DNA from: Adineta vaga
Taxonomy: Eukaryota > Animalia > Rotifera
Length of the DNA stretch: 64,000 nt
Direction of reading: 5' to 3'
Assembly (NCBI GenBank): GCA_021613535.1
Contig: CP075492.1
Location: 19,840,001 to 19,904,000, forward strand
The notes beneath the pieces were generated by a model. The model was given only the letters and a program-made list of their open reading frames with translations. It searched no databases and was not told the origin of the DNA. The position numbers were made by a program, and so were the translations under genes. This document shows, piece after piece, positions 32,889 to 64,000 of this stretch; within the stretch, counting starts at the first letter, position 1, and the number at the start of each line of letters is the position of its first letter.

Positions 32889-35800
32889 TTATCTTTGTGA
32901 CTTACGTGCAGGAAGACCTTTCCATTGTGTGTTTGGTAGCAATAGATCATTTTTCATTACAAGTGTAAAAGGATAAAGTCGGTTGTTACCCATTAATTTA
33001 CAACCTGACATTACAACTGAGCCACTCATAAGAACACAGGCGTTGCCTATGGTAACAGGAACTAGTTTCAGAATACGTTGTTCGAAAGTGTGACACTGAA
33101 ATAGTTGTATAGAACAATAATATATAGAGAAAAAATGATAAGAAACGCATATATTACCACAATATGAGCATCCATATGAAGCCGAACATCATCTCCAATA
33201 GTCACCAAGTTGTAATCAAAAAGAGACGAAAGACTAGGTAAAATCACATTGTCGCCAATGTTCGCACCATATGCTCGAAATAATCGAATTAGCCATTGCG
33301 TATTGCCAAGCAATGAAGAAATCAAAATTTCGTGATCATCTTGTAGTTTTTCTATTATCTGTTTGATTGTTTGATTGTGTACACATGCTTTCCATCGAAA
33401 GAAACTGCAAACAATTATTGTATGAATGATTGATCCACCAACAAGCCCGCCAAAAAAATAGATACTTATGAGAAGACATTTACTAATATAATGAGAAAAA
33501 CATGTCTTCCAAAATGGAATAGTTTTAATTTGATCTTCTATCGCTTGTCTAAAAGGCATGTGAAATGGCATAGCACGAGCTGGAACGCCAATAAAAACAT
33601 CTCCGTTGTTGCTAATTGTTTCTCGAGTAATACGTGTTAAATTACCAACCATAGTATGAGATGCAAGATTACTACCCGGCAAAATTGAACATCCATTCGC
33701 AATGTTTGTATGAGATCCGAGCGTCATTTGATCTACACGATGGTCGCCTGAAAGCGTCATTTCACTAGGAACTAATAAGACATAACCAAAACTAGTGAAA
33801 CCTGTTTCGATTTTTAATAAATTTGTTGGATAGGACAAGAAGATGTCTATATGACGGAGTTTGACATCATCTTCAACGTGAGCACCTAGCCAACGAAGAA
33901 TAAAAGAATAAATATGATCGTATCCAGTTGGCAGTGACCAAGCATGACGAAAACTAGATACAATTAACTGGCGAAGCCACAGTTTATGTAAATATGACCA
34001 TGATGCCATTGAATATGTCTCACCAGCAATACAAGAACCGACTACAAATTTTAACAGGAAGAGAGTGACAAAACAAGCCATAATTGACCACAAAGTCCAG
34101 CAAAAAGCAATATTAATTGGTAACGGTATTTGTTCAACTGAATAAACTTTGTAAACAGTGATTAAAAATGCTCCATGAATACAAATAAGTGATATGAGCG
34201 CAATAACTTGGTAGATTTTGTGCCATATCGAAAATGATCTATTACTGTTTGTAATGAGAGTGTCGGATGGAACAGCTTCGTGTTCTTCACCATCAATAAT
34301 CGTTCGAGATGCAATAAAGCCAGTGACTGATGACATTGGTTGAACAATAACATTATCTTGTATATCAACTTCACCAGATAAAATCGAACGTGCACTGATT
34401 GAACAGTGGCAACCAATCTTAATTGAATGTAATGCAAAAGTATCATTATCATTGAAATACAAACAATTTAGAGTCGTGTTATCAGCAATATAAGTTTCAT
34501 CACCAATCTGTAACAACCATGGAGCATCAATAGTTACGCTATAAATATGTGCATTGAAACTAACTCGAGCACCACAAAGACATAGATAGCAATTGTACAA
34601 TGATGTACCAACAATATGTTGCAACCAAAACGCATTATTATTCCATAGTCGATTCAAAAACCACCAACGGTAATAGCTGCAAGAGAAAACATTGTCATTC
34701 TTGATGTTTTGTGGAAACAGTAGACGTGAACAGATGACATAGAAAAAAAGATGCAATACTGGCAGGATAGGGAAAAGAAATGGACACCATTGATGAATTA
34801 TCATAATTGGCCATAGCCATTGACAAACAAGAATTACAATACCAACCGATTCTATGACGAAAGAAGGTGCAAGGCGAATATATGAATCACCAGTCTGATT
34901 CTTCGTGGATGCTGTCTTTATTAATGGCTCACAAACCAATAAAGGTTCAACTACTTGAGCCAATTCTCGAATAGATGGATTTGCGAATAAAAGATCGATG
35001 TCTACTTTGTTCGAAACATGCTGTCGAATCAAACTGATTGCATGCATAGCATTCAAAGATGTTCCACCAAGACGACCAAAAGAAATATCAATATGAGGAG
35101 ACTCAACATGAAAAGCTTGACTAAAAATACATTGCAGTTGCTGCTCTAGTGCAGTGCGCGGCAAAACGCCGTCATGATTATTATGTGACGATAAAAAGTT
35201 AGGTGAAGGAAGAACTTTCCGATCTATTTTACCATTTGAATTCAATGGTAGTTTGTCAAGTATCATGAATATTGATGGAATCATGTGTGATGGTAAATAT
35301 GATTGACAATGTTGACGTAATTGTGTTTCATTCATATTATCAGAACTTTGAACATAAGCAACTAAATGATCATCACCCCATTTCATCACAATACACACAG
35401 AAATAGATGATATGTTAAGTAAACATCGTTCTATTTCACCAAGTTCAATACGTTGTCCATGTAATTTGATTTGATGATCTTTTCTTCCTTGATAATGAAG
35501 AAGACCATTACTATCCCTTTTGACGAGATCACCTGTTCGATAATATATTTCACTATCGATTTCAATAAATGCTTTTGATGTCAAATCATCACGTCCAAGA
35601 TAGCCAGCAAAGACACCAACTCCTCCTACAAACAATTCAGCTTCTTCATTGATCATCACATTTTGCAAGAATTCATCTAGAACTAGAGTTCGATAATTTG
35701 CAAGGGGTGCACCTATGGGAATGCTCTGTATATTGGATGATATGTTGATATCATAGAATGTGCAAGCAATAGTTGCTTCCGCTGGTCCATATAGATTCCA

Positions 35801-38386
35801 TAGAAGACAGTTTTGTAAATTGATGTTTTTGATTGAATCAATCAATTTAATCGTGAAAGGTTCACCTATAAATGAAAAATCAAATGAGTTAAGATGAAGA
35901 AATAACTTCATGTCACATGCTCACCAATACTACAAAGCGATCGAAGATATGCAAAGCCATCAGACATATTACCTTGTTTCACAAAAGCGAAAAAACTCTG
36001 TAATAAACTCGGTACAGCATGCATATATGTGATTTGTTTATTTCGTAAAACTTCATATAAATAATCAAAATCAATTGTTCCTCTTGGATGAAGCATAACC
36101 AATGTGGCACCATGGATTAAAATACCAAGTATTTCTTGAACATGAATATCAAATGAACATCGTGCCATTTGTATAGCTATATCGTATTGATTGAATGAAT
36201 CAATAAAAGTTAAAGAATCGATACATTTAACGAAATTCTCATGTCGAACTTGAGCCTACAAAGAAGAAGATTAAAAACAGTTAAATATTTAAAAAAAAGA
36301 AGGAAACAATTAACAAACCGCTTTTGGTATTCCAGTTGAACCACTTGTAAAGATGATGTAAGCTATGTTATGAGATGTCACTCTTATACTTGATAATTCA
36401 TCAATATCAACATTATTCTCCATATCATTGTTAGTTAATATAGAATCCATATTAACTAAGATAATATTATCATTAAACTTCTCTTTAGTCAATGAATGAA
36501 CAAGAACAAGACGAGATTGAGTTTGTTCTATGAGAGAATATAATCGATGTTGTGGATCTCGTGCTGATAATGGACAATAAACACTACCAATCATTTCAAT
36601 GGCCATTATACCAATAACCTATTCAAGATCAATATTCATTCTCATTCTCATTCTCATTCTCATCAACTACTCACCATTGATATACTTCTCTCGACACATT
36701 GACAAATTATTTCACCTACACAAATATGATATTCATTGAGTAGATTCGAAGATAACAATTGAACATAATACAATAGTTCAGAATATGTCAAAGATTGATC
36801 ATCTAATTCAACAGCTAACTTTTGTGGATATATCTTTGCTTTCGAAGCAAACTCATGATGAATACAATTAGTAGTAGTCGAAGAAGAAGGAAATGATATT
36901 TGTGTTTGATTTAGAGATTGTATTAGAAATTGTTCATTTGGTAACAGTAATGATAACTCATAGATTGATGTCTCTTTTCTAGTAGTATGAATAGATGTCG
37001 ATAAATGATGTAACATTGAATGAAATTGATGTGAAATCTTTTCAATTGTCTTCACATTGAATAAATCAAGAGATGCATTGATTGTGCATGAGAGTTCATT
37101 CATATCTAGATTATGTTGATAACTAACGATAAAATCAAATTTACTCATGATTTCATCTTCACTAATCTTAAGTGACAATGGTACTAAAGAAAGTGGACTA
37201 TCACCAATTCTTATTTCATTATTGTTGTTATATGATATGAATTCAAATGATATGTCGAGAAATGCAGGATGTAATATATTAGGATGTTGATCAAGGATAC
37301 GTTGAAGTGGAAAATATGAATATTTCATACTATTTCTTATCATTTCACTAACATAATCGAGTAGTTGACAAAAAGACCAATGAGAATCTAATTGGCATCG
37401 TAATGGAATAGCATTTACAAACATACCAATCACTGACTTGAGTTCATCTCTATATCGACCATGTGTATTCATTCCAATGCATAGATCATTTTCTCTATTT
37501 GTTAATTTAAATAAGAAGATGTAGTAGATTGCAAGAGATAGATGTTCGATGGAATGATTGTGTGCGGATGCATAGGAAAGAAGATGACGTGAAATATCTT
37601 GACCAAAATCAAAAGAAATGAATGTTCCACGACCTGTTCGATGTTCATTTACAAGACGATATCGATCATATGGTAATGATAAAGATTGATCAAGTTTGCA
37701 ATCATAAAGAGTATCATGCCAAAACAGATTTGCGCCACTCATCGGCATTTGTCGTTCAATAACAGCATCTAGATGAAAAAGAAAGAATCGATGAATTAAG
37801 AAAGAAATAGAGTTTTAGTTACAATCAACATAACGTGGAATAGTATCATCGGTGTTAGATAGTTGACTTGTTGTATATGCTTGATTAAGATCATGAAGAA
37901 ACACATTCATTGATGGAACATCAAAAGTAGCATGATGAAAATTGAAAATAATTACATCTTTGTCAGAGAGAAGATCATTTGAAGAGATGTGTTTGTAGTA
38001 AATAAGATGACATCGAAAGACAAGACCTTGAGCTAGATGAAAAAGTTGAGGATTACGTTTTTCTTCATGTATTATATTAGTGAGTTGTTGATGTGTTTCA
38101 TAAGTGCTTTGAATAAATGTAAATAATGTATTGTTATCATTGTTCGAAGTCATGATTTGTTGCATGAATGAGTTTGTTTCTGTATTAAAGACAAGTGATG
38201 TACGAAGTGATTCATGTTTTGTAAGGATTAGTTGAAGAGCATTGTAGAGTTGTTTAATTGATAGAGTATGTGTTGAGGAGAGACGATAAACAAAAGGCAT
38301 ATTGTAGATTGCTACTTGTGGTTTCTCAGGATCGAAACGAATTCGTTCATCAAGCCAAATACGAGCTTGTGCAAATGATGCTGGTG
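32889..38386 (-). other. NRPS terminal module: C(HHATFDV)-A-T(GGTSL)-Pls-like terminal domain
   Basis: Introns 37769-37822, 36619-36674, 36256-36318, 35866-35924 and 33096-33157. After T come hydrophobic segments alternating with three hexapeptide beta-helix blocks (LCGARV..LQIGDET, WLGAHV..GVPAR, AYGANIG..VTIGDDV..CHTFEQRILK..LVMKND..WKGLPAR). Confidence 0.92.
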
Positions 38387-41300
38387 CTATAACAGTGCAA
38401 CTTTTGTTGAACTTGAACGAAATTCATCCATTAGCACATGTATCCTGAGAGTTTTTCGACTCATATTACAACTCCTCCCTTGAGCTAGCTAAATGGTTCA
38501 CCTAGGTTGCTTTTTTATAGATCAATGTTGTTATGCAGTGAAAAGCAAAAAAGCTTCATATATGAACATGTTCTAGGTTATAACTGTTCAGAAATTTTTG
38601 TCTTTATCAAAAATTGTATACTAAGTTTTGATTTCATTTATTTTCACTATAAACTTATTATATTGGACATTTACAGATTGGTTCTGTTTACACAATTGCT
38701 CGTAAAATTCTCTACAAACAGATTTAGAAATTGTTCATCAAATAATAAAGATGTGAAAGGCTGTATGAAAAATGTTGAGAAACTTTAAAGTCTTCGTTGT
38801 TCAAAAAATTTCATGTTGAAATGATTTCTTATGATGTAAAAGTTAAACAGAAAAGTATTCAAGTTTAACTATAGAAGAATCGGAACTACAAGCAGAAGAT
38901 AACATTTTTCACGCACGACGAAATGATCACTAATCGACTGTCTTGTCCTATACTTTCCAGTTTCTTATTTTTTCCTTACTCTAAGGCAAGAGTCTTTTCG
39001 ACTGAAAAGTAAAAACAATCTTCATTGGAGTTCAGGATGACACGAACTTCGTCTAATCAATCAGAAATAAAAGAATCAGAGGAGAATTGTAAGATATTCA
39101 AAATATACTTTAAGTTCAGAAAAGAGTCTTTTTCTTTTCTTTCAAAAAAAAGTTTACTTGATAATTATGAAAAGCCAGAAGCTGGAAAAAATATAAGATA
39201 TATGGAACTTCTTAGTGTTCAGACAAGATTCTCGTCATAGGAAAGAAAACGATTCTTGTCAGTTTTCCAAGATAAACAGCACGTAATTTTGCCATTGTGT
39301 AATTATATATATAAAGGAGTACTTGAATATTGTTTATTGATTACTAATATGATAGTTAGTATAATGTCGCTTTGAATTTGTGCTTTTCCTAAAATGTTCA
39401 TCTCGTTCACACGACATTTGACAACTCTTTATTTCAGCTCGATGCAGAGGAAATAACTGAAGATATAATAGCCATCTTTTTCCGAAAAACTACACTTTTA
39501 TTGAACACATTTCAGTATTCTACTAATCAATATCTTTCTATTTATTCTAGTTTTTTAGATTTTTTTCATCAACTGCAAAAGTCTTCTATGGACAGACGAA
39601 GGATACTTCGATGATTTGTTCAAAAAATTATTGTTTGACAATGCTCTTACAAGAGAACTTTCCCAGATACCCATTCGCTTTTGAATCGGGACTTAGCGCA
39701 TCTCATAGATTTTAATGAGTTATGCTTACCATAAAAAAGTTCGTGCCACTAGCTTGTCCCTGAGGAGATCGAACGTTTTCACTATCACTGCCGTAAGGAT
39801 AATTCGATCAGAGAAAATCACTAACTCAATCAATATGAATTGAAATGAGTTGAGACTTTACACACGTATAATCATATTTTCGTGGCAGATGACATGAAGT
39901 TTGAATTCAAGTTAACTTAACAAGACCAACTATTGCAGATATTAGCGTGATTTTAATCTCATTGGTTTTATTACTACTTAAAATAGCAAGACAAATAAAG
40001 GAAATTGTTAGAATAGTGAACATAAATATCACAAGACAAATTCGGATGCTGTAGAGTTGTAGATTTTCTCGTACCTTGATGTTTGCATCGAAACTTATAT
40101 TATAAATTAAATATTCAGAGATTTCGTTCGTGTACAAAATCATAACATCTGATGAATAATAAATAATGAATCGAGCATGCGCATTCAGTTGAATTTTTAT
40201 TACGTGAACAAAAAGATAATAGTGTGCACTCTTATACGAAAACGATTTCAATTGCATCTAACCAAAATGACAGATGCATCGGTTATATCTTCTTTTCTCT
40301 TTGTAAGATTTTCTCAATCTGTTATATCCACGAACTCCAATGTTTCGAATGTATCAATTTATGAACAAGAAATTGCTAATCATCGTCCTGGGGTGTTGAA
40401 TTCGATTATCCACCACCATTTATTTTGTATAGAAAGTGAAAGTTCACTTGATCTTATCTCAAATGAAATATTGGAAGAAGACATTGACCAGTATGCTGAT
40501 GATGATAATGTTAAATTGGATTTAGATTTTACTGACACTGACAACGATGCATATGGTGCTTCTCTGCAAAACTTTTCTCCTGATTACATAAAAAAGTCAC
40601 AGGCTATGGCGATGCGAAGGATCCGGGGACGCAAAAAGCGTCTTCGATCGTGGAAGTATGTAAAACGTTGATTTCGACGTGTTTATACATGTGTAAAGTC
40701 TTAATTCATTTAGGTAATATATACATGTACTGAATACCTTGTTGACTCACATATCATCCATTTTTAGAGTTACGATTACGTGCACGTAAACAAGACCAAC
40801 TCTAGCGCATCGAAACGAAAATTTCGTGTTTTTTTATTATGTGTCTAAAATTGTTAAGCTGCAATAGGTACATGTGAAATTAAGCATAATTATCTTGTTT
40901 CTTTTACAATTTTTTCAAACTTTGCTCCGAAAATTCATAATAAAATACGACGAAAAAGGTGCTAATAATAGCTTATAAAAAGCTTTATCAATCTAGCGCA
41001 AATCAGGTAAGACAACAACAAATAAGATTGAGACAAGAAACCAAGATTTGGTATACATGAATCTTGTCAGACAGACAAAGTCAGTTTTTTTAGGCAAGAA
41101 TCTCTTATAGAAGGAATGGAAGAAGAATCTTGTTTGAAATCGAGGAAAACAAGAATTTGAAAAGAAAAGGACAAGACGACCGATTAGTGTATAGTTAGAG
41201 CACCTGTCATAGTCTATGCGTGAGAGAAACAGACTGAAAATGAATACAAATTCCTACTTATATACGCTTCAACACTGTTTTTATATCATGCTTCACAAAA

Positions 41301-44300
41301 CGATATTCATACATTTTTCTCTCATATAACATATGTAATAAATATAAAAAAGATATACCTTCGTATGTGATATTTGGTTGACGACAAAGAACTATCTGGT
41401 GCAATTCATTTACTTCATCCGGCAAAATAAGACTAAGTTTGGTCACAGGTGAAATAATTAAATCAGTCTGATTGACATCGAAATCCATTGAAAAAAGTTG
41501 TTCGAAAAAATATTGAAATCTTTGACCAATTTTTGCAATTGTCGTATCTTCAAATAGATCACGTGAACAAATAAGATGACATGATAATATATTATCATCC
41601 GATGTTGAATTATAAACAAATCTCAACAAGAAGTCAAATTTAGCGGCTTCAAATAATTTTTCTAATAGCACTGGTTTTAAACTGACATCATCAAAAGAGA
41701 ACTGATTGATACTTGAGAATATAGTCATAAGATCAAAAGATATTTGAAGAAAAGGAACTGTTGATTGATTAAGATGCAAATCAGTAAGAATATTTTGTAA
41801 TGGATAATGAGAATGTTCAAGTATTGATAAACATTTTTCTCGTACATGTTTCACAAGTTCATTAAATGACCAATGTGTATTAAGTTGAATACGATATGGT
41901 AATGTTGACACAAACATTCCCATCATATTTTGTAATTCAGTTCTGTATCGATTAGCATTAAGACAAGTGACACATAAATCATTTTGATCATGAGTTAATT
42001 TGAACAAAAAAGAATAAAATATAGCTAGACCTAATTGAAATGGTGTTACATCATGTATAGAAGCATAATCAAGAAATGAAGTCGAAATCTGTCTATCGAA
42101 AGAAATTTGAGCGGTAGAAGCAAAACCAGATCGTTGATCATTAGATGTATAATGTTGATCAACTGGTAATGATAATCGATGTTCCAAATTATATCCTTCA
42201 AATTGCAAATACCAAAATTCATGTGATGATGTCATATCTATATTACGTTCGTGGACTGTATAATCAATATATTGTAATGATTCTTCATCTTCAATCATTA
42301 TCGTATTGCTGTTATATGCGACACATAAATCATTAAAAAAAATTTGACGAGAAGATCGATCAGTTGCTGCATGATGAAATGCTAATAAAAGAATATCAGA
42401 GCCTGTGATAAATTCATTGCTATCCACTTCTTTATTCGACATCATTTGCTGTCGAAGTATTTGACAATGAAAAACACGACCAATTGATAAATCAAATAGA
42501 GAAGGATTAATAGTTATTTCATTAATAATATCGTGAAGTTCATTTTCATCTTTGAATTTTACAACGGTATTCATTATGAATGCTTGATGATTTTCCATAA
42601 TCTCTTGTTTTAGAGTGCCATTATCGTTATTAAAATTAACCGATGTACGTAATATTTTATGTTTATATAAAACATATCGAAGAGCTTGTAATAGACGACT
42701 AATCAACATCGATCCTTCAACTACCCGCAGAACAGACAGCTCATTGTAGATACCAATTTTACGAGAAAAACGCACTTGTTCATCAAGAAAAATACGTTCT
42801 TGAGCGAAAGATGCAATACCTTGAAATTTAAAAATAATTATTACAACTTTTTTCGAATATTAAACTTATAGATTCCTAACCTCGATCAATATGTAATGTA
42901 CGCCATTCTGCTGATTTCATTTGGTGAATTGAAACAGATTGAAGTAATTGTGAATGCTGAACAATTGTTGGTTGTAGAAGAAACAGCCCAATGGAAAGCT
43001 TACGAGTGTCAAAACCGAATGATGATTGATAACGATGATAAAGTTCAATAAACAAAAGTGAATGACCACCAATACTAAAAAAACTGACAACCGTCGAAAC
43101 TTGTTTTTCTTTGTATCCAAGAACCTGACGCCAAATATCACATATACGTTCCTCTACTTCATTTTGCGGTACATTAAGTTCCTTTGAGGTCGACATAGTC
43201 GATGATCCTAAGTTAGGAGAAGGAAGAACTTTCCGATCTATTTTACCATTTGAATTCAATGGTAGTTTGTCAAGTATCATGAATATTGATGGAATCATGT
43301 GTGATGGTAAATATGATTGACAATGTTGACGTAATTGTGTTTCATTCATATTATCAGAACTTTGAACATAAGCAATTAAATGATCATCACCCCATTTCAT
43401 CACAATACACACAGAAATAGATGATATGTTAAGTAAACATCGTTCTATTTCACCAAGTTCAATACGTTGTCCATGTAATTTGATTTGATGATCTTTTCTT
43501 CCTTGATAATGAAGAAGACCATTACTATCCCTTTTGACGAGATCACCTGTTCGATAATATATTTCACTATCGATTTCAATAAATGCTTTTGATGTCAAAT
43601 CATCACGTCCAAGATAGCCAGCAAAGACACCAACTCCTCCTACAAACAATTCAGCTTCTTCATTGATCATCACATTTTGAAAGAATTCATCTAGAACTAG
43701 AGTTCGATAATTTGCAAGGGGTGCACCTATGGGAATGCTCTGTATATTGGATGATATGTTGATATCATAGAATGTACAGTCAATAGTTGCTTCCGCTGGT
43801 CCATATAGATTCCATAGAAGACAGTTTTGTAAATTGATGTTTCTGATTGAATCGATCAATTTAATCGTGAAAGGTTCACCTATAAATGAAAAATCAAATG
43901 AGTTAAGATGAAGAAATAACTTCATGTTACATGCTCACCACTACTGCAAAGTGATCGAAGATATGCAAAGCCATCAAACATATTACCTTGTTTCACAAAA
44001 GCGAAAAAACTCTGTAATAAACTCGGTACAGCATGCATATATGTGATTTGTTTATTTCGTAAAACTTCATATAAATAATCAAAATCAATTGTTCCTCTTG
44101 GATGAAGCATAACCAATGTGGCACCATGGATTAAAATACCAAGTATTTCTTGAACATGAATATCAAATGAACATCGTGCCATTTGTATAGCTATATCGTA
44201 TTGATTGAATGAATCAATAAAAGTTAAAGAATCGATACATTTAACGAAATTCTCATGTCGAACTTGAGCCTACAAAGAAGAAGAGTAAAAACAGTTAAAT

Positions 44301-46744
44301 ATTTAAAAAAAAGAAGGAAACAATTAACAAACCGCTTTTGGTATTCCAGTTGAACCACTTGTAAAGATGATGTAAGCTATGTTATGAGATGTCACTCTTA
44401 TACTTGATAATTCATCAATATCAACATTATTCTCCATATCATTGTTAGTTAATATAGAATCCATATTAACTAAGATAATATTATCATTAAACTTCTCTTT
44501 AGTCAATGAATGAACAAGAACAAGACGAGATTGAGTTTGTTCTATGAGAGAATATAATCGATGTTGTGGATCTCGTGCTGATAATGGACAATAAACACTA
44601 CCAATCATTTCAATGGCCATTATACCAATAACCTATTCAAGATCAATATTCATTCTCATTCTCATTCTCATTCTCATCAACTACTCACCATTGATATACT
44701 TCTCTCGACACATTGACAAATTATTTCACCTACACAAATATGATATTCATTGAGTAGATTCGAAGATAACAATTGAACATAATACAATAGTTCAGAATAT
44801 GTCAAAGATTGATCATCTAATTCAACAGCTAACTTTTGTGGATATATCTTTGCTTTCGAAGCAAACTCATGATGAATACAATTAGTAGTAGTCGAAGAAG
44901 AAGGAAATGATATTTGTGTTTGATTTAGAGATTGTATTAGAAATTGTTCATTTGGTAACAGTAATGATAACTCATAGATTGATGTCTCTTTTCTAGTAGT
45001 ATGAATAGATGTCGATAAATGATGTAACATTGAATGAAATTGATGTGAAATCTTTTCAATTGTCTTCACATTGAATAAATCAAGAGATGCATTGATTGTG
45101 CATGAGAGTTCATTCATATCTAGATTATGTTGATAACTAACGATAAAATCAAATTTACTCATGATTTCATCTTCACTAATCTTAAGTGACAATGGTACTA
45201 AAGAAAGTGGACTATCACCAATTCTTATTTCATTATTGTTGTTATATGATATGAATTCAAATGATATGTCGAGAAATGCAGGATGTAATATATTAGGATG
45301 TTGATCAAGGATACGTTGAAGTGGAAAATATGAATATTTCATACTATTTCTTATCATTTCACTAACATAATCGAGTAGTTGACAAAAAGACCAATGAGAA
45401 TCTAATTGGCATCGTAATGGAATAGCATTTACAAACATACCAATCACTGACTTGAGTTCATCTCTATATCGACCATGTGTATTCATTCCAATGCATAGAT
45501 CATTTTCTCTATTTGTTAATTTAAATAAGAAGATGTAGTAGATTGCAAGAGATAGATGTTCGATGGAATGATTGTGTGCGGATGCATAGGAAAGAAGATG
45601 ACGTGAAATATCTTGACCAAAATCAAAAGAAATGAATGTTCCACGACCTGTTCGATGTTCATTTACAAGACGATATCGATCATATGGTAATGATAAAGAT
45701 TGATCAAGTTTGCAATCATAAAGAGTATCATGCCAAAACAGATTTGCGCCACTCATCGGCATTTGTCGTTCAATAACAGCATCTAGATGAAAAAGAAAGA
45801 ATCGATGAATTAAGAAAGAAATAGAGTTTTAGTTACAATCAACATAACGTGGAATAGTATCATCGGTGTTAGATAGTTGACTTGTTGTATATGCTTGATT
45901 AAGATCATGAAGAAACACATTCATTGATGGAACATCAAAAGTAGCATGATGAAAATTGAAAATAATTACATCTTTGTCAGAGAGAAGATCATTTGAAGAG
46001 ATGTGTTTGTAGTAAATAAGATGACATCGAAAGACAAGACCTTGAGCTAGATGAAAAAGTTGAGGATTACGTTTTTCTTCATGTATTATATTAGTGAGTT
46101 GTTGATGTGTTTCATAAGTGCTTTGAATAAATGTAAATAATGTATTGTTATCATTGTTCGAAGTCATGATTTGTTGCATGAATGAGTTTGTTTCTGTATT
46201 AAAGACAAGTGATGTACGAAGTGATTCATGTTTTGTAAGGATTAGTTGAAGAGCATTGTAGAGTTGTTTAATTGATAGAGTATGTGTTGAGGAGAGACGA
46301 TAAACAAAAGGCATATTGTAGATTGCTACTTGTGGTTTCTCAGGATCGAAACGAATTCGTTCATCAAGCCAAATACGAGCTTGTGCAAATGATGCCGGTG
46401 CTACAATAAGCAGAATAGAGACGAGAATAACTAATGATAATGTCAATTATCAAATCATGTCTCCTGTTAGTATTGTCATCATTTTTCATGGTATCATCGT
46501 TCTGAGTGTAAAAGTATATTCTTATTAACTGCATAATACTAATCTTCTTTTTCTTGCTTCGTTGCGAAACTGATTGTTACTAGAAAACATCACTTTTGTT
46601 CAAGTATGTCTTTTTTCGCTATCGCAAAACAGCTTCTCTACAGATTGTGAGAAAACTATTCAAAATGAACGATGTATAATATCAATCCTTTCAGACCAGT
46701 AGTATCAAAAATGCTACACATGTTCAGTCATTCGATTTCCAAGA

Positions 46745-46780
<36 letters not shown>

Positions 46781-52297: not shown

Positions 52298-52333
<36 letters not shown>

Positions 52334-55300
52334 TGCCTCATCAGGATAATAAAAACAGTAGAAAATATTTATACTTCTTCTTGTCCAGTCTCTAAGTTAA
52401 ACAAATAATCATACCTTCATCAGTAATATTGTCTAATCTATGGAAGATTATTGATTTCATTTGTTCAGCTTCTTCTGGTAGAATAAGAGAGAGTTTGTTA
52501 ATCGATGTCTTAGACTCATGCATCGTAGTATCACGAGACTTCGTCTGAAAAAGTTGTTCGAGGAAATATTGAAATCTTTGAGCAATTTTTGTCACTGTTC
52601 TTCTCTCAAAAAGATCATATGAGCAAACAAATGCACATGACAACTCATTAACAATCGATGTCGACTTGTTCAAAAAATGCAATGAAAAGTCAAATTTCGC
52701 CACTTGATATGATTGTTCTAGTGACACTTTCTCCAAATCTACGCCATTCATACATAACTCATTGACATCTTCTGATTCAGTGATAAAGTCAAACATTGTT
52801 TCAAGAAATGAAGCATTTGATTGATTAACATGTAGGTCACTAAGAATATGTTGAAGTGGATAATGAGAATGTTCAAGTATTGATAAACATTTCTCTTGTA
52901 CATATGTAACAACTTCATTGAATGACCAATGATGATCAAGTTGAATACGATATGGTAATGTTGACACAAACATTCCTATCACATTGATGATTTCACTTCG
53001 ATATCGATTAGCATTTATACTAGCAATACATATATCATTTTCATGATGAGTTAATTTGAATAGAAAGACATAAAATATCGAGAGTCCAAGTTGAAAAAGT
53101 GTCAGATGATGTGATGAGGCATAATTTAGAAATGATGTACATATATCATCATCAAAAGTAATTTCAACAGTAGAAGCTAAGCCTGTTCGTTGATTCGTTG
53201 ATAAACGAGATCGATCAATTGGTAATAATAATTGATGATCAAGATTATATCCTTTGAGCTCTGATCGCCAGAAGTGTTGAGATAATGTCATATCCATAAT
53301 ATGTTCATGAATAGAATAATCAACATATTGAAAGGAATGATCATCATCTATAGGTAATAAATCATCAGTCTGATAGGCAAGAGAAAGATCACGAATAAAG
53401 ATTAATGTAGATGCACCATCAAAAAATGCATGATGAATAGTAAATAATATTAAATCATCTGCATTCAATAAATCATCATCATTGTTAGTTAACAAAGCAT
53501 CAGATCGATAATGGCGAAGAATATGACAATTAATAACATGTCCTTTCGATAGATCAAATAAATCAGATTGATTTAATATTCTTTTCACAATTTCACTCTT
53601 TTCACTATTCACTTCTTCAAGATTTATCACAATAAAACTACATGATTTCACATTATCAATAAGAACATTTTCATCTAAACAATGTTGTATAATAATACCA
53701 TTTGTATCAACATCAAGTGATGTTCGAAGAATATTATGTTTTCTTATGACAGATTCAAATGCATGTTGTAATCGTGCAATCGATATATGATCATTATTAG
53801 ATGAAATACTAAAAAGTAATGGAATAACATACATGTTCTGATTATTATTATTGTTGTTGTTCGTAGATGAAAAACGAATTTGTTCATCTAAGAAAATACG
53901 TTCTTGTGCATAGGATGCTTTTGCTATAAACAATAAATTACAAAATATAAAAAAATATAGTTAGAAAATAAGCACTCTATACCTCTAACGAGATGTAATG
54001 AAGACCAATGATAATTATCGATAGTGAGATTAATATGCATTATATGATGAATTAGTTGAGCATGATTCATGATGGTTGGATGTTGAAATAAATCAGAAAT
54101 AGAAAGAGAATTTGTTTCTAAATTAAATTCTATTTTATAACGATGAAATAGTTGCATCATAAGTAATGAATGACCACCAATAGTAAATATATTTGTATTG
54201 ATTGAGATTTGTTCGTGTTTGAGTATATCACACCAAATATGATGAATAAGAAGTTCGATTTCATTTGTTGGTTGTGTCAGTTGGATATCATTTGTGAGAT
54301 GTGTCGATGGTAGATGAGAAAAGCTAGGTGAAGGAAGAAGTTTCCGATCTATTTTACCATTTGAATTCAATGGTAGTTTGTCAAGTATCATGAATATTGA
54401 TGGAATCATGTGTGATGGTAAATATGATTGACAATGTTGACGTAATTGTGTTTCATTCATATTATCAGAACTTTGAACATAAGCAATTAAATGATCATCA
54501 CCCCATTTCATCACAATACACACAGAAATAGATGATATGTTAAGTAAACATCGTTCTATTTCACCAAGTTCAATACGTTGTCCATGTAATTTGATTTGAT
54601 GATCTTTTCTTCCTTGATAATGAAGAAGACCATTACTATCCCTTTTGACGAGATCACCTGTTCGATAATATATTTCACTATCGATTTCAATAAATGCTTT
54701 TGATGTCAAATCATCACGTCCAAGATAGCCAGCAAAGACACCAACTCCTCCTACAAACAATTCAGCTTCTTCATTGATCATCACATTTTGAAAGAATTCA
54801 TCTAGAACTAGAGTTCGATAATTTGCAAGGGGTGCACCTATGGGAATGCTCTGTATATTGGATGATATGTTGATATCATAGAATGTGCAAGCAATAGTTG
54901 TTTCCGCTGGTCCGTATAGATTCCATAGAAGACAGTTTTGCAAATTGATGTTTTTGATTGAATCAATCAATTTAATCGTGAAAGGTTCACCTATAAATGA
55001 AAAATCAAATGAGTTAAGATGAAGAAATAACTTCATGTTACATGCTCACCAATACTGCAAAGTGATCGAAGATATGCGAAGCCATCAAACATTTTACATT
55101 GTTTCACAAAAGCGAAAAAACTCTGTAATAAACTCGGTACAGCATGCATATATGTGATTTGTTTATTTCGTAAAACTTCATATAAATAATCAAAATCAAT
55201 TGTTCCTCTTGGATGAAGCATAACTAATGTGGCACCATGGATTAAAATACCAAGTATTTCTTGAACATGAATATCAAATGAACATCGTGCCATTTGTATA

Positions 55301-58300
55301 GCTATATCGTATTGATTGAATGAATCAATAAAAGTTAAAGAATCGATACATTTAACGAAATTCTCATGTCGAACTTGAGCCTACAAAGAAGAAGAGTAAA
55401 AACAGTTAAATATTTAAAAAAAAGAAGGAAACAATTAACAAACCGCTTTTGGTATTCCAGTTGAACCACTTGTAAAGATGATGTAAGCTATGTTATGAGA
55501 TGTCACTCTTATACTTGATAATTCATCAATATCAACATTATTCTCCATATCATTGTTAGTTAATATAGAATCCATATTAACTAAGATAATATTATCATTA
55601 AACTTCTCTTTAGTCAATGAATGAACAAGAACAAGACGAGATTGAGTTTGTTCTATGAGAGAATATAATCGATGTTGTGGATCTCGTGCTGATAATGGAC
55701 AATAAACACTACCAATCATTTCAATGGCCATTATACCAATAACCTATTCAAGATCAATATTCATTCTCATTCTCATTCTCATTCTCATTCTCATCAACTA
55801 CTCACCATTGGTATACTTCTCTCGACACATTGACAAATTATTTCACCTACACAGATATGATATTCATTGAGTAGATTCGAAGATAACAATTGAACATAAT
55901 ACAAAAGTTCAGAATATGTCAAAGATTGATCATCTAATTCAACAGCTAACTTTTGTGGATATATCTTTGCTTTCGAAGCAAACTCATGATGAATACAATT
56001 AGTAGTAGTCGAAGAAGAAGGAAATGATATTTGTGTTTGATTTAGAGATTGTATTAGAAATTGTTCATTTGGTAACAGTAATGATAACTCATAGATTGAT
56101 GTCTCTTTTCTAGTAGTATGAATAGATGTCGATAAATGATGTAACATTGAATGAAATTGATGTGAAATCTTTTCAATTGTCTTCACATTGAATAAATCAA
56201 GAGATGCATTGATTGTGCATGAGAGTTCATTCATATCTAGATTATGTTGATAACTAACGATAAAATCAAATTTACTCATGATTTCATCTTCACTAATCTT
56301 AAGTGACAATGGTACTAAAGAAAGTTGACTATCACCAATTCTTATTTCATTATTGTTGTTATATGATATGAATTCAAATGATATGTCGAGAAATGCAGGA
56401 TGTAATATATTAGGATGTTGATCAAGGATACGTTGAAGTGGAAAATATGAATATTTCATACTATTTCTTATCATTTCACTAACATAATCGAGTAGTTGAC
56501 AAAAAGACCAATGAGAATCTAATTGGCATCGTAATGGAATAGCATTTACAAACATACCAATCACTGACTTGAGTTCATCTCTATATCGACCATGTGTATT
56601 CATTCCAATGCATAGATCATTTTCTCTATTTGTTAATTTAAATAAGAAGATGTAGTAGATTGCAAGAGATAGATGTTCGATGGAATGATTGTGTGCGGAT
56701 GCATAGGAAAGAAGATGACGTGAAAGATCTTGACCAAAATCAAAAGAAATGAATGTTCCACGACCTGTTCGATGTTCATTTACAAGACGATATCGATCAT
56801 ATGGTAATGATAAAGATTGATCAAGTTTGCAATCATAAAGAGTATCATGCCAAAACAGATTTGCGCCACTCATCGGCATTTGTCGTTCAATAACAGCATC
56901 TAGATGAAAAAGAAAGAATCGATGAATTAAGAAAGAAATAGAGTTTTAGTTACAATCAACATAACGTGGAATAGTATCATCGGTGTTAGATAGTTGACTT
57001 GTTGTATATGCTTGATTAAGATCATGAAGAAACACATTCATTGATGGAACATCAAAAGTAGCATGATGAAAATTGAAAATAATTACATCTTTGTCAGAGA
57101 GAAGATCATTTGAAGAGATGTGTTTGTAGTAAATAAGATGACATCGAAAGACAAGACCTTGAGCTAGATGAAAAAGTTGAGGATTACGTTTTTCTTCATG
57201 TATTATATTAGTGAGTTGTTGATGTGTTTCATAAGTGCTTTGAATAAATGTAAATAATGTATTGTTATCATTGTTCGAAGTCATGATTTGTTGCATGAAT
57301 GAGTTTGTTTCTGTATTAAAGACAAGTGATGTACGAAGTGATTCATGTTTTGTAAGGATTAGTTGAAGAGCATTGTAGAGTTGTTTAATTGATAGAGTAT
57401 GTGTTGAGGAGAGACGATAAACAAAAGGCATATTGTAGATTGCTACTTGTGGTTTCTCAGGATCGAAACGAATTCGTTCATCAAGCCAAATACGAGCTTG
57501 TGCAAATGATGCCGGTGCTACAATAAGCAGAATAGAGACGAGAATAACTAATGATAATGTCAATTATCAAATCATGTCTCCTGTTAGTATTGTCATCATT
57601 TTTCATGGTATCATCGTTCTGAGTGTAAAAGTATATTCTTATTAACTCCATAGTACTAGTCTTCTTTTTCTTGCTCGGTAACCCCACATCATCCGACAGT
57701 CGAGATTTGTCGGATAGAGCCGTTTATGGCATCAACGACTATTTTATAATTCTAATAGATTTTGTGCGGTCTTTAGGCTGTAACAAACTTTTCAGAGCTG
57801 GAATTTATCAGTATAAACATTCTCCATGAAGATACAACGATGTACACATACAGATGCTTTAACTTTATGCGAAAATATATGATAAACTTTTTATTACTAT
57901 ATTTTTGATATATTTTGCATTTCAGAATAGAAGATTTTTCCTTGAAATAGATATATAGTTTTGATTTAAAGTTTTGCTGATTAAACAATTGTTCCTTATG
58001 AGGTAAGATGTGCTTTATTGCACGTTTTTTCCAGAACTTACGGGTTTAAAAGAAATAAACTGTGAAGATAATCATTTTTTGTGAAAATAATAACAAAAGA
58101 GAATCTCTGACTTTTCATAAATTGCTTTGCAATGTAATTACATATAGCACAAAAATCAATGTTTGATTTAATTTTAGTTTATTCGAAATTTTTATATTCT
58201 TAGGCAGATAAATGTTGAAATTGATCATCTTTCTATATAAAACAAAAACGATAGAAATAGATTACTCCGCCAATATAACTCTCACATAAAAAATTCATAT

Positions 58301-61300
58301 ATTCAACTGTATGTTTCGATACTCAGTAGTATATTCGATCACCATTGGATTTGTAAAACTTTGAATTGTTTCATGGTAAGTAATTTTTATTTGTAGAAAA
58401 TTTTTTCATTCTTTTTCTCGCTTCATTATGAAACTGATTGTTACTAGAAAACATCACCTTTGTTCAAGTATGTCTTTTTCTGCTATCGCAAAACAGCTTC
58501 TCTGCAGATTGTGAGAAAACTATTTAAAATGAACGATGTATAATATCAATCCTTTCAGACCAGTAGTATCAAAAATGCTACACATGTTCAATCATTCCAT
58601 TGCCAAGAAATAATATGTATATATATGAATGAGTTGTAACTTTATTGTACGAGTGATGAAAAAAAATGAAAATGAGTTTAGAAAGAATCTGATGCCTAGA
58701 TATTGTTCTCCGTCATTTTCTAAGTATCATATAAAAATTTCTCCCACTACCAGACGCAAAGGAACCGAGATATTTAAAATCCAAAAGTCCAACGCCTAAG
58801 GACATGGATTTGGGAGGATTAGGATGAGGATGTATGTGTGTGAGGATGAGAATGAGAGTTCAGGAAAGACACATCCATCCTCACGAATACCTTTACTCCC
58901 ATCCTCAAGATGAAAATCGAGAACACATCCTCATCGAGATTATAGAATTTCTGATGAAGTTTCTGGAAAATGACATAAAAAACTCGATTCAACAAAGGTA
59001 CATTTTCGTGATAAAACAGTAGCCTATAGAAGTATTCTAGTTTGTTTACCTCTAAATCATACTCAGCGTAGTCTCAGGAGTCAAATGATATATAACGAGA
59101 CTACCTGTGGCCAAAAGCCTCTCGAAAATCAGTAAAAGAAATCTGAAGCTACATTCCGACGTAAAATGTAAATTTCTTCTAAAATTTACATGCAGTATAG
59201 CTGAAATTGTGACCACTGAAAGAACTTTTTTTTTACTAAGTTGGATGAAAGCTTGAGCGAAATCGGTCAAGCACATCAAAAGCTATTGACGAAACACTAT
59301 CGAAAATCTGGAGCTACAAAGTGAGTGACAGAAGGGGTTTTTCTTCTTCTTAGCGTAAAAACGAAGTTTTTTTTGAGTATTGTAGGCCGCTTCGGTACAG
59401 TTTTATGCTGTATCGTGCAGTAGATTAATTTTTTTCAAAACTAGGTTTCGTGATCTGACAGTGCTGGGTTTCGTCTAGAGCTACATGTGTTTGTAAAAGT
59501 ATTATCTCCATAAACCATCACAAAAAGAAAAGAAAATAAATTTATGAATCGTATGTTTCGATAGCCTGAGAGTTGCTCCACAAAACGTGCTATTTATTTT
59601 CTCTTTTATTTTTCTTTCTTTGCTCGAAAAATCAGTTTCGGCTTGGATGAGTCATCCGAGACTGTTTATTTATTATCCTCCAATACGACCATCTCAACGA
59701 GGGTGCAAGGTAGAGACTTGAAAATTATAACGTACTACGTTAAACGTAGTACGAGCATGAGTTAAGAAGTAAAACAAAACAAAAAAAGTTTAAATCTGTC
59801 AAAAAGAACCGGAGTTATCAGCAAAACACATAAAAAACCCAACCGTACAATAAAGTTGCTACTCATTCATATATATATATACTGCCTCATCAGGATAATA
59901 AAAACAGTAGAAAATATTTATACTTCTTCTTGTCCAGTCTCTAAGTTAAACAAATAATCATACCTTCATCAGTAATATTGTCTAATCTATGGAAGATTAT
60001 TGATTTCATTTGTTCAGCTTCTTCTGGTAGAATAAGAGAGAGTTTGTTAATCGATGTCTTAGACTCATGCATCGTAGTATCACGAGACTTCGTCTGAAAA
60101 AGTTGTTCGAGGAAATATTGAAATCTTTGAGCAATTTTTGTCACTGTTCTTCTCTCAAAAAGATCATATGAGCAAACAAATGCACATGACAACTCATTAA
60201 CAATCGATGTCGACTTGTTCAAAAAATGCAATGAAAAGTCAAATTTCGCCACTTGATATGATTGTTCTAGTGACACTTTCTCCAAATCTACGCCATTCAT
60301 ACATAACTCATTGACATCTTCTGATTCAGTGATAAAGTCAAACATTGTTTCAAGAAATGAAGCATTTGATTGATTAACATGTAGGTCACTAAGAATATGT
60401 TGAAGTGGATAATGAGAATGTTCAAGTATTGATAAACATTTCTCTTGTACATATGTAACAACTTCATTGAATGACCAATGATGATCAAGTTGAATACGAT
60501 ATGGTAATGTTGACACAAACATTCCTATCACATTGATGATTTCACTTCGATATCGATTAGCATTTATACTAGCAATACATATATCATTTTCATGATGAGT
60601 TAATTTGAATAGAAAGACATAAAATATCGAGAGTCCAAGTTGAAAAAGTGTCAGATGATGTGATGAGGCATAATTTAGAAATGATGTACATATATCATCA
60701 TCAAAAGTAATTTCAACAGTAGAAGCTAAGCCTGTTCGTTGATTCGTTGATAAACGAGATCGATCAATTGGTAATAATAATTGATGATCAAGATTATATC
60801 CTTTGAGCTCTGATCGCCAGAAGTGTTGAGATAATGTCATATCCATAATATGTTCATGAATAGAATAATCAACATATTGAAAGGAATGATCATCATCTAT
60901 AGGTAATAAATCATCAGTCTGATAGGCAAGAGAAAGATCACGAATAAAGATTAATGTAGATGCACCATCAAAAAATGCATGATGAATAGTAAATAATATT
61001 AAATCATCTGCATTCAATAAATCATCATCATTGTTAGTTAACAAAGCATCAGATCGATAATGGCGAAGAATATGACAATTAATAACATGTCCTTTCGATA
61101 GATCAAATAAATCAGATTGATTTAATATTCTTTTCACAATTTCACTCTTTTCACTATTCACTTCTTCAAGATTTATCACAATAAAACTACATGATTTCAC
61201 ATTATCAATAAGAACATTTTCATCTAAACAATGTTGTATAATAATACCATTTGTATCAACATCAAGTGATGTTCGAAGAATATTATGTTTTCTTATGACA

Positions 61301-64000
61301 GATTCAAATGCATGTTGTAATCGTGCAATCGATATATGATCATTATTAGATGAAATACTAAAAAGTAATGGAATAACATACATGTTCTGATTATTATTAT
61401 TGTTGTTGTTCGTAGATGAAAAACGAATTTGTTCATCTAAGAAAATACGTTCTTGTGCATAGGATGCTTTTGCTATAAACAATAAATTACAAAATATAAA
61501 AAAATATAGTTAGAAAATAAGCACTCTATACCTCTAACGAGATGTAATGAAGACCAATGATAATTATCGATAGTGAGATTAATATGCATTATATGATGAA
61601 TTAGTTGAGCATGATTCATGATGGTTGGATGTTGAAATAAATCAGAAATAGAAAGAGAATTTGTTTCTAAATTAAATTCTATTTTATAACGATGAAATAG
61701 TTGCATCATAAGTAATGAATGACCACCAATAGTAAATATATTTGTATTGATTGAGATTTGTTCGTGTTTGAGTATATCACACCAAATATGATGAATAAGA
61801 AGTTCGATTTCATTTGTTGGTTGTGTCAGTTGGATATCATTTGTGAGATGTGTCGATGGTAGATGAGAAAAGCTAGGTGAAGGAAGAAGTTTCCGATCTA
61901 TTTTACCATTTGAATTCAATGGTAGTTTGTCAAGTATCATGAATATTGATGGAATCATGTGTGATGGTAAATATGATTGACAATGTTGACGTAATTGTGT
62001 TTCATTCATATTATCAGAACTTTGAACATAAGCAATTAAATGATCATCACCCCATTTCATCACAATACACACAGAAATAGATGATATGTTAAGTAAACAT
62101 CGTTCTATTTCACCAAGTTCAATACGTTGTCCATGTAATTTGATTTGATGATCTTTTCTTCCTTGATAATGAAGAAGACCATTACTATCCCTTTTGACGA
62201 GATCACCTGTTCGATAATATATTTCACTATCGATTTCAATAAATGCTTTTGATGTCAAATCATCACGTCCAAGATAGCCAGCAAAGACACCAACTCCTCC
62301 TACAAACAATTCAGCTTCTTCATTGATCATCACATTTTGCAAGAATTCATCTAGAACTAGAGTTCGATAATTTGCAAGGGGTGCACCTATGGGAATGCTC
62401 TGTATATTGGATGATATGTTGATATCATAGAATGTGCAAGCAATAGTTGTTTCCGCTGGTCCGTATAGATTCCATAGAAGACAGTTTTGCAAATTGATGT
62501 TTTTGATTGAATCAATCAATTTAATCGTGAAAGGTTCACCTATAAATGAAAAATCAAATGAGTTAAGATGAAGAAATAACTTCATGTCACATGCTCACCA
62601 ATACTACAAAGCGATCGAAGATATGCGAAGCCATCAAACATATTACATAGTTTCACAAAAGCGAAAAAACTCTGTAATAAACTCGGTACAGCATGCATAT
62701 ATGTGATTTGTTTATTTCGTAAAACTTCATATAAATAATCAAAATCAATTGTTCCTCTTGGATGAAGCATAACTAATGTGGCACCATGGATTAAAATACC
62801 AAGTATTTCTTGAACATGAATATCAAATGAACATCGTGCCATTTGTATAGCTATATCGTATTGATTGAATGAATCAATAAAAGTTAAAGAATCGATACAT
62901 TTAACGAAATTCTCATGTCGAACTTGAGCCTACAAAGAAGAAGAGTAAAAACAGTTAAATATTTAAAAAAAAGAAGGAAACAATTAACAAACCGCTTTTG
63001 GTATTCCAGTTGAACCACTTGTAAAGATGATGTAAGCTATGTTATGAGATGTCACTCTTATACTTGATAATTCATCAATATCAACATTATTCTCCATATC
63101 ATTGTTAGTTAATATAGAATCCATATTAACTAAGATAATATTATCATTAAACTTCTCTTTAGTCAATGAATGAACAAGAACAAGACGAGATTGAGTTTGT
63201 TCTATGAGAGAATATAATCGATGTTGTGGATCTCGTGCTGATAATGGACAATAAACACTACCAATCATTTCAATGGCCATTATACCAATAACCTATTCAA
63301 GATCAATATTCATTCTCATTCTCATTCTCATTCTCATTCTCATCAACTACTCACCATTGGTATACTTCTCTCGACACATTGACAAATTATTTCACCTACA
63401 CAGATATGATATTCATTGAGTAGATTCGAAGATAACAATTGAACATAATACAAAAGTTCAGAATATGTCAAAGATTGATCATCTAATTCAACAGCTAACT
63501 TTTGTGGATATATCTTTGCTTTCGAAGCAAACTCATGATGAATACAATTAGTAGTAGTCGAAGAAGAAGGAAATGATATTTGTGTTTGATTTAGAGATTG
63601 TATTAGAAATTGTTCATTTGGTAACAGTAATGATAACTCATAGATTGATGTCTCTTTTCTAGTAGTATGAATAGATGTCGATAAATGATGTAACATTGAA
63701 TGAAATTGATGTGAAATCTTTTCAATTGTCTTCACATTGAATAAATCAAGAGATGCATTGATTGTGCATGAGAGTTCATTCATATCTAGATTATGTTGAT
63801 AACTAACGATAAAATCAAATTTACTCATGATTTCATCTTCACTAATCTTAAGTGACAATGGTACTAAAGAAAGTTGACTATCACCAATTCTTATTTCATT
63901 ATTGTTGTTATATGATATGAATTCAAATGATATGTCGAGAAATGCAGGATGTAATATATTAGGATGTTGATCAAGGATACGTTGAAGTGGAAAATATGAA
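32889..64000 (-). CDS. Giant spliced multimodular NRPS: ...C-A-T-[C-C-A-T]x4-Pls-like membrane domain (5' end outside window)
   Basis: A-domain cores LTYSEL, AYIIFTSGSTGIPK, FDIH, NLYGPAE, GYLGR, YRTGDL, GRKDHQIKLHGQRIELGEIE, NGKIDRK. T motifs GGHSL x4 and GGTSL. C motifs SxAQxR, HHxxxD, IGMFVxxxPxR, YP(F/L). ORF pieces join in frame through GT-AG introns; stop TAA at 32891-32889; one 1-bp frameshift at ~51547. Confidence 0.95.
38928..41189. mobile_element. Decayed DNA transposon with CACTA termini inside NRPS intron 38387-41358
   Basis: TIR CACTAATCG...GTCTTGTCCT.T.CTTT (38928-38956 / 41161-41189); internal broken ORF 40177-40671 on the + strand; TSD not clear. Confidence 0.75.
41359..42819 (-). 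other. Divergent condensation-domain exon (HHAATDR)
   Basis: GIASFAQERIF start after intron 42820-42880, HHAATDRSS, MGMFVSTLPYR, HYPL, AKFDF; clearly diverged from the three identical HHAFFDG exons. Confidence 0.9.
42881..46400 (-). other. NRPS module 4: C(HHATFDV)-A(code DIQHCSLIDK)-T
   Basis: Same exon structure as the terminal module; unique T domain FFSIGGHSLL. Confidence 0.9.
46862..51953 (-). other. NRPS module 3 plus downstream C: C(frameshifted)-A(code DIQSLGMITK)-T-C(HHAFFDG)
   Basis: Repeat unit with ~5553-bp period; divergent patch ~49340-49790; 1-bp deletion at ~51547. Confidence 0.9.
52415..57517 (-). other. NRPS module 2 plus downstream C: C-A(code DIQHCILIAK)-T-C(HHAFFDG)
   Basis: Near-identical copy of the repeat unit with all frames open. 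Confidence 0.9.
58627..59868. mobile_element. Non-autonomous TIR element inserted in a (TA)n tract of NRPS intron 57518-59963
   Basis: 25-bp TIR GAATGAGT(T/A)G(T/C)AACTTTATTGTACG, TA repeats on both sides; the paralogous introns have only (TA)n at this site. Confidence 0.9.
59964..64000 (-). other. NRPS module 1 (as visible) plus downstream C: partial C-A(code DIQHCILIAK)-T-C(HHAFFDG)
   Basis: Near-identical copy of the repeat unit, cut by the window edge within the C domain. Confidence 0.9.

Follow-up and report, generated by a model that had tools for sequence, protein, structure and literature searches.

A Pls/PosA-type terminal domain at the end of a hybrid polyketide synthase-nonribosomal peptide synthetase gene of Adineta vaga, a bdelloid rotifer

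Pls of Streptomyces albulus and PosA of Acinetobacter baumannii are the closest described systems to the locus reported here. In both, a thiolation (T) domain is fused directly to a membrane domain with hydrophobic helices in pairs and three segments of hexapeptide beta-helix, and neither a thioesterase (TE) nor a reductase (R) is present. These enzymes have no condensation (C) domain and polymerise a diamino acid, and the characterised Pls enzymes consist of a single adenylation-thiolation (A-T) module (PMC10522769, PMC9205021). In Pls, moreover, the T-bound residue goes to an amine acceptor that diffuses freely, and at no time is the chain tethered (PMC9205021). In this study, we analysed a window of 64,000 nucleotides from the bdelloid rotifer Adineta vaga (GenBank assembly GCA_021613535.1, contig CP075492.1, C3:19840001-19904000; all positions below are those of the window unless stated otherwise). 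We found that positions 32889-64000 on the minus strand are the 3′ half of a hybrid polyketide synthase-nonribosomal peptide synthetase (PKS-NRPS) gene of about 70 kb overall, and that this gene ends in a domain homologous to the terminal domain of Pls and PosA.

The terminal domain lies mostly in one open reading frame (ORF) at 35911-33068, which encodes the end of an A domain, a T domain with the motif GGTS, and then about 580 aa. After a 62-nt intron, the final exon adds 68 aa, and the terminal domain comes to about 645 aa in total. An earlier note, made from the letters of this DNA alone, had described the last T domain as running within the same exon into this domain and had given its end as starting with CHTFEQRILK. 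Both statements agree with our results, as T and terminal domain share one open frame (35920-33071) and the final exon begins with CHTFEQRILK and ends with KGLPARKSQR and a stop codon. The domain follows T directly, with no TE, R, or terminal C, and neither TE nor R was found in the terminal ORF or downstream; the note, too, had seen no TE or R at the end. The ORF is 100% identical to the A. vaga "hypothetical protein I4U23_017075, partial", on a 20.35-Mb contig. The public model of this protein splices at GLPAR|GTAAGT to a distant mini-exon that ends in ...RVDAALSIGV (32889-32905 versus 32096-32130), whereas straight read-through of the terminal exon ends in ...KSQR and a stop.

To assign domains, the exons were searched singly and not as a joined spliced protein, and the last two exons were represented by the public model (P0001, I4U23_017075). 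The best specific family of the terminal domain was TIGR02353 ("Pls/PosA family NRPS"), with an E-value of 5.7e-30 for the ORF alone and 3.5e-46 (157.9 bits) for residues 320-976 of the public spliced model. The terminal domain does not reach the curated cut-off of this family (423.1 bits), whereas a bacterial-type relative (P0143) scores 605. Therefore, it is a divergent relative, and it may not have the activity known from the characterised enzymes. By profile score, homology to TIGR02353 is clear, but the score does not show membership at the equivalog level. Furthermore, 42 of the 88 columns conserved in distant relatives are retained in the A. vaga domain, including the His of the third block and the Glu three residues on, at the start of the last exon, which are invariant in bacterial-type relatives.

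The predicted fold agrees with this assignment. Hydropathy showed hydrophobic pairs at three places with three soluble blocks between them. In an AlphaFold2 model (pLDDT 89, pTM 0.89, 27 homologues), helix hairpins alternate with beta-rich blocks (helices at 16-40/42-62, 227-255/262-289, and 465-504), and in place of a third pair there is one long hydrophobic helix with a kink. The earlier note had read transmembrane segments alternating with three beta-helix blocks, and hydropathy and model both bear this out. The six helices in three pairs (PMC10522769) are seen in the hydropathy profile and in the model, and in the latter three left-handed beta-helices are predicted to form one pseudo-threefold domain with a Pls/PosA-like fold. 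When the model was compared with ESM-Atlas clusters named Pls/PosA family NRPS, the TM-score was 0.83-0.87 over about 630 residues. The earlier note had proposed that 34870-32889 is homologous to the C-terminal region of Pls and had asked for profile and structure searches. Both gave a match, to TIGR02353 and to the Pls/PosA fold over the whole domain, and thus the observation stands; in this gene, the domain is joined to an assembly line of several modules that have canonical C domains.

Meanwhile, searches of the Protein Data Bank by sequence and by Foldseek gave no solved Pls structure, and only single hexapeptide acyltransferases were matched. These were QdtC, LpxA, LpxD, and the sugar (maltose/galactoside) and serine O-acetyltransferases. 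They consist of left-handed beta-helix units as the terminal domain does, their donors are pantetheine thioesters, and they are the sole solved structures that match it. However, they are soluble homotrimers of one chain each, whereas the A. vaga domain combines three non-identical repeats and membrane hairpins in a single chain and is fused to a carrier domain. The model in the PosA paper likewise matches only single hexapeptide acyltransferases (PMC10522769).

As a whole enzyme, the A. vaga protein differs from Pls and PosA. Instead of a single A-T module without C, it has eight A domains, 16 condensation-type domains, and a PKS. In addition, the Pls/PosA domain is about 730 aa long and that of A. 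vaga about 645 aa, the third hairpin here is one kinked helix of about 40 aa, the profile score is well under the family cut-off, and the A-domain pockets here do not look like diamino-acid pockets in a tentative hand alignment.

The large ORFs between 33 and 64 kb are all on the minus strand and match Condensation, AMP-binding, AMP-binding_C, and PP-binding. Five A domains with C and T lie inside the window, along with part of a sixth module at its edge, in line with the at least five C/A/T modules of the earlier note, and with Pfam matches to C, A, and T and the motifs HHxxxD, SGSTGxPK, and GGxS in the translations they are elongation modules of type I NRPS. We also fetched 60 kb of upstream sequence and found that the gene extends about 39 kb past the window edge, through three further modules, up to KS, AT, DH, ER-type, KR, and ACP domains (ketosynthase, acyltransferase, dehydratase, enoylreductase, ketoreductase, and acyl carrier protein), all on the same strand. 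Read 5′ to 3′ along the minus strand, the gene starts with KS-AT-DH-ER-KR-ACP, which is followed by a condensation-type domain C′ and then by eight C-A-T modules. The highly reducing PKS thus stands immediately before the first condensation domain, as in a hybrid PKS-NRPS.

According to stop-to-stop segments and a tblastn map, the repeat unit is about 5.55 kb long and has six exons. Exon a encodes the N-terminal half of the C domain (HHATFDV), exon b the remainder of C and the start of A, exons c and d the A core and the substrate pocket, exon e the end of A and T, and exon f a second complete condensation-type domain, C′ (HHAFFDG). In the last module, every junction is canonical (GT..AG) and in frame, with introns of 54, 56, 63, 59, and 62 nt. 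The C′-to-C junction is a phase-1 intron with the donor GAAG|GT and the acceptor AG|CA, and its plain form is about 460 nt long. The intron at 38387-41358 given by the earlier note was exact (donor GAAG|GTATAT, acceptor TTATAG|CA, phase 1, in frame), and a DNA contig spans it at single-copy depth. Two of the C′-to-C introns are unusually long because dispersed repeats with inverted ends were inserted in them (38450-41250 and 58614-59881); copies of these repeats with 69-85% identity are found on other chromosomes.

The module copies are 97-100% identical in DNA except for swapped pocket exons. Exon d (35925-36255, 43939-44269, 49488-49823, 55036-55380, 62585-62929, and upstream copies) exists in at least four versions, with 100%, 65%, 45%, and 34% identity to exon d of the reference module, while the surrounding modules are near-identical. 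This mosaic points to gene conversion in which exon-sized pieces were swapped. An assembly artefact in the number of modules was also considered and judged unlikely. In an independent DNA run of 2013, coverage was about 230x on the repeat exons versus 33.6x on the unique intron, and the ratio of about 7 fits the seven near-identical assembled copies.

In addition, a C′ domain, missed by the earlier note, follows every T but the last, and C′ and C stand in tandem in this order (C′ at 41359-42819, 46862-48365, 52405-53918, and 59954-61467; C at 36675-38386, 44680-46400, and so on). C and C′ share about 35% identity and the motif HHxxxD, and the nearest relatives of each are ordinary C domains and not epimerisation (E) domains. 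An E domain was considered for C′, whose position is E-like. However, it was rejected by the C1-type start motif and HHAFFDG, and the nearest solved relatives are ordinary C domains (AB3403, TycC, Txo1/2, LgrA), none of them E. The antiSMASH labels in the table of Nowell et al. 2024 also give both kinds as Condensation_LCL (PMC11258130).

The pocket residues were read from a manual alignment with PheA numbering, and these results are tentative. In this alignment, modules 4, 5, and 8 have the pocket D-I-Q-H-C-I-L-I-A, and modules 1 and 7 have the Ser-like pocket D-I-Q-H-C-S-L-I-D, with three further sets in modules 2, 3, and 6. No acidic pocket of the diamino-acid type appeared in any of the eight A domains.

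Hexapeptide acyltransferases generally use pantetheine thioesters. With moderate confidence, we propose that the region is the 3′ part of one intron-bearing PKS-NRPS and that the terminal domain acts as a membrane chain-release acyltransferase and not as a homopolymerase. The helix hairpins would hold all soluble parts on one side of the membrane, and the pseudo-trimeric beta-helix body would act on a phosphopantetheine-bound thioester, as in Pls/PosA and the acyl-ACP-dependent hexapeptide acyltransferases. The domain would take the finished acyl-octapeptidyl chain from T8 and transfer it at the membrane to a nucleophile. This could be water, a free amine, or a hydroxyl, and the hydroxyl might be intramolecular. 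Thus, it would replace TE or R as the release step, release would be sited at the membrane, and no homopolymer would be expected. As a further step, which we regard as possible but doubtful, bdelloids may have turned the Pls/PosA domain into a general off-loader of templated (lipo)peptides that ligates the completed chain right at a membrane, with a free amine or some membrane or surface acceptor as its partner.

Several points weigh against the release reading. The profile score of the terminal domain is far under the family cut-off, and the role of 16 condensation-type domains for eight A domains is unaccounted for. We know of no acceptor, product, or enzymology for any multimodular member. 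None of the available sequencing runs was on record as RNA; three were guessed to be of RNA type and yielded small contigs only. These three runs hold 8-20% of the sampled words of the region, and no contig from them bridges any C′-to-C junction, 41359/38386 included. Furthermore, three apparent defects would truncate the protein if they are real. One is a 1-nt deletion (AAA to AA) at about 51547 (51545-51548) in exon a of module 6, seen against six otherwise identical copies and the sole difference from the module-7 copy over 615 nt. The second lies in module 1, where a 1-nt insertion (AAA to AAAA) shifts the frame at NGK|VDRK, the A10 site (L011:3340-3440, about 23.4 kb beyond the window end). 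The third is a stop codon reported by Nowell et al. 2024, whose entry for the locus reads "2 frameshifts, 1 stop codon" (PMC11258130).

The earlier note inferred a membrane ligase/polymerase that could yield repeating-unit polyamides, or peptides released and exported at the membrane. In a polymerase reading of this kind, the terminal domain would ligate finished oligopeptide units head to side chain, iteratively as in Pls, and yield such polyamides. Homology and a common fold with the polymerisation domains of Pls/PosA speak for it, and Pls accepts free oligomers (PMC9205021). However, a start from PKS, ACP, and C′ implies that the upstream PKS would acylate the peptide N-terminus, which would leave no free alpha-amine and so no obvious amine for self-ligation. 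The tentative pockets, two of them Ser-like, also lack the diamino-acid type, and in the tree a long stem sets the bdelloid domains, which score under the family cut-off, apart from the characterised polymerases. A homopolymerase is therefore improbable in our judgement, and the note's polymerase claim is not upheld. The region might also be a tandem array of separate genes, that is, C-A-T-C′ units and a final C-A-T-terminal gene, with intergenic gaps of about 460 nt to 4 kb. In favour of such an array, the gaps are far longer than the introns of 54-63 nt elsewhere, a stop lies a few codons past the putative donor after each C′, the public annotation of the end is only a partial 976-aa model, and no RNA contig crosses a gap. 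On the other side, the long gaps are the short gap plus repeat insertions, and a stand-alone unit that starts with C and ends with C′ has no obvious logic. Moreover, no in-frame ATG was found ahead of exon a and its C1 motif, every junction has an in-frame GT..AG solution, and the C′-to-C donor and acceptor fall at the same codon and phase in all modules, even in the diverged ones. In the manual curation of Nowell et al. 2024, the locus is one unit of 16259 aa, and its paralogue in region 5.2 (AVAG|g48151), which also has NRPS_term, is a single annotated and pathogen-induced gene model (PMC11258130). The missing ATG, the constant splice phase, and the single g48151 model favour one gene, and an array of genes is highly improbable. 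The absence of a bridging RNA piece is no evidence against splicing. Among the RNA-type contigs, one has the 54-nt a/b intron removed, and it could originate from any identical module copy; a 158-nt piece lies on the unique C′ exon.

A decaying copy has to be taken more seriously, although we consider it unlikely. In this case, the architecture would be real, but the subtelomeric paralogue of region 3.8 would no longer make a full-length enzyme. The two indels and the published list of defects point this way, as do the dispersed repeats inside two introns of the window, the hAT and LINE (long interspersed nuclear element) remnants in the flanks, and the small part of the region that is present in the RNA-type runs. 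However, both indels lie in short A runs of repeats that are 97-100% identical, where assembly polishing is weakest, and the deletion at about 51547 may be an assembly error in the repeat. In addition, the repeat insertions are intronic and not exonic, and the remaining exons of the eight modules are open, as is the terminal frame of 950 codons. Nowell et al. 2024 note in their supplement a high expression of several "defective" clusters, and for this reason the defects may be assembly error (PMC11258130). The statement of the earlier note that the modules are spliced into one frame agrees with the predicted splice junctions, but in the assembly the deletion breaks the continuous frame.

The positions of the features are collected in the following table.

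Features of the 3′ half of the PKS-NRPS gene in the window, from the 3′ end upward, and the PKS at its head.
Feature	Position	Strand	Remark
Last exon: end of third beta-helix block and stop	32889..33095	-	starts CHTFEQR (conserved H-x-x-E motif)
Intron inside terminal domain, 62 nt, GT..AG, phase 0	33096..33157	-	public model P0001 has identical intron
Most of the Pls/PosA-type terminal domain, with helix pairs and beta-helix blocks 1, 2, and (start only) 3	33158..34894	-	
Last T domain, GGTS, in terminal-domain exon	34952..35143	-	PF00550 at residues 257-320 of ORF 35911-33068
A domain, module 8	35144..36618	-	exons c 36618-36319, d 36255-35925, e from 35865
C domain, module 8, HHATFDV	36675..38386	-	exons a 38386-37823, b 37768-36675
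Enlarged C′-to-C intron with dispersed repeat (inverted ends)	38387..41358	-	
C′ after T7, diverged copy, motif HHAATDR	41359..42819	-	
Module 7 (C-A-T)	42881..46400	-	
Plain C′-to-C intron, about 460 nt, phase 1, with (TA)n run	46401..46861	-	
C′ after T6 (48365-46862) and module 6 (C-A-T), divergent A-pocket exon	46862..51954	-	
C′ after T5 and module 5 (C-A-T)	52405..57518	-	
Second enlarged C′-to-C intron, element of about 1.27 kb with inverted ends	57519..59953	-	
C′ after T4 and module 4 (A-T; C domain cut by window edge)	59954..64000	-	
Highly reducing PKS (KS in two exons, AT-DH, ER-type, KR, ACP)	L012:562-9376, about 30.5-39.4 kb beyond window end		heads gene

The locus has been recorded before. 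It is subtelomeric on chromosome 3 and corresponds to "region 3.8" of Nowell et al. 2024, and their Supplementary Data 9 lists it with an added domain "NRPS_term" (PMC11258130). Regions 3.1, 3.2, 3.6, and 5.2 are flagged in the same way, and the domain is left without comment or discussion (PMC11258130). The main text of two published accounts of bdelloid NRPS and PKS genes contains no lysine-synthetase-like, hexapeptide, or transmembrane ending. In our literature search, we found no paper that connects rotifers with Pls, NAPAA, or TIGR02353, and no discussion of TIGR02353 on multimodular enzymes. The earlier note regarded the architecture as uncharacterised in an animal; this is right for the function of the ending, which is unexplained, but the locus itself had already been catalogued as NRPS_term. 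The feature, correctly placed by that note and homologous to Pls/PosA, is catalogued yet uninterpreted in the published supplement.

The terminal domain is not restricted to this locus. In A. vaga, at least 13 loci have it, most with open frames of more than 900 aa, and the position of the last intron is common to at least eight paralogous loci. Relatives are abundant in A. steineri, A. ricciae, and Rotaria, and environmental matches with 40-45% identity came from eukaryote-like contigs in which the C exons are split in the same way. In the phylogenetic tree, the bdelloid domains formed a clade with 100/100 support and a long stem, apart from the bacterial-type Pls/PosA. The paralogue g48151 in region 5.2 of the same genome has a similar layout (KS-AT-DH-KR-ACP, NRPS modules, NRPS_term), and its terminal domain is about 43% identical to that of region 3.8. 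However, g48151, with 8748 aa, is the shorter of the two; it is pathogen-induced and has been listed as intact, whereas region 3.8 has more and near-identical modules and apparent frameshifts. The product of g48151 has been predicted as a cyclic heptadepsipeptide, and the terminal domain was not considered (PMC11258130). Furthermore, TIGR02353-like ends were found on multimodular NRPSs of A. vaga (I4U23_004507), Mastigamoeba balamuthi, the eukaryote assembly GCA_017884045.1, and a metagenome-assembled genome of Pseudomonadota (MFH0784194.1). Like region 3.8, these four have canonical C domains, with two or three A domains before the terminal domain. However, they have only 2-3 modules, no PKS, and no doubled C; their terminal domains are 25-38% identical to that of region 3.8, and none of them has been characterised.

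The window lies about 450 kb from the contig end and has a G+C content of about 31%. An intronless NmrA-like/NAD(P)-binding ORF (18699-19643, plus strand, E 2e-40) sits in a local G+C peak of 0.42 versus about 0.31, and it may be a foreign-derived tailoring gene or an unrelated gene. The flanks of the cluster contain hAT transposase remnants and a LINE-like element (1009-3490, minus strand, and 4590-9250, plus strand). The LINE-like element consists of an ORF without family name and then an ORF with a reverse transcriptase match and a weak endonuclease match. Such flanks are typical of subtelomeric, transposon-rich surroundings.

To our knowledge, NRPS chain release by a Pls/PosA-type domain is uncharacterised in any organism, and the characterised Pls/PosA enzymes are all single-module homopolymer makers. 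With its Pls-type end, a templated PKS-NRPS of eight modules implies a hitherto unstudied release chemistry. It should be noted that the novelty is tempered, as a supplement published earlier contains both the locus and the label NRPS_term, and as this copy may be defective. The ending of region 3.8 is a new architectural variant and not a new kind. For NRPS engineers, the domain may offer a module for intermolecular ligation or release. If the off-loader reading is true, the published predictions of cyclic depsipeptides for pathogen-induced bdelloid clusters would need to be revised. One PKS-NRPS with NRPS_term, that of region 5.2, is switched on against a fungal pathogen (PMC11258130). Since this ending stands on at least 13 loci and one of them is pathogen-induced, the chemistry, cellular location, and export of these animal-made antimicrobials probably depend on the terminal domain.

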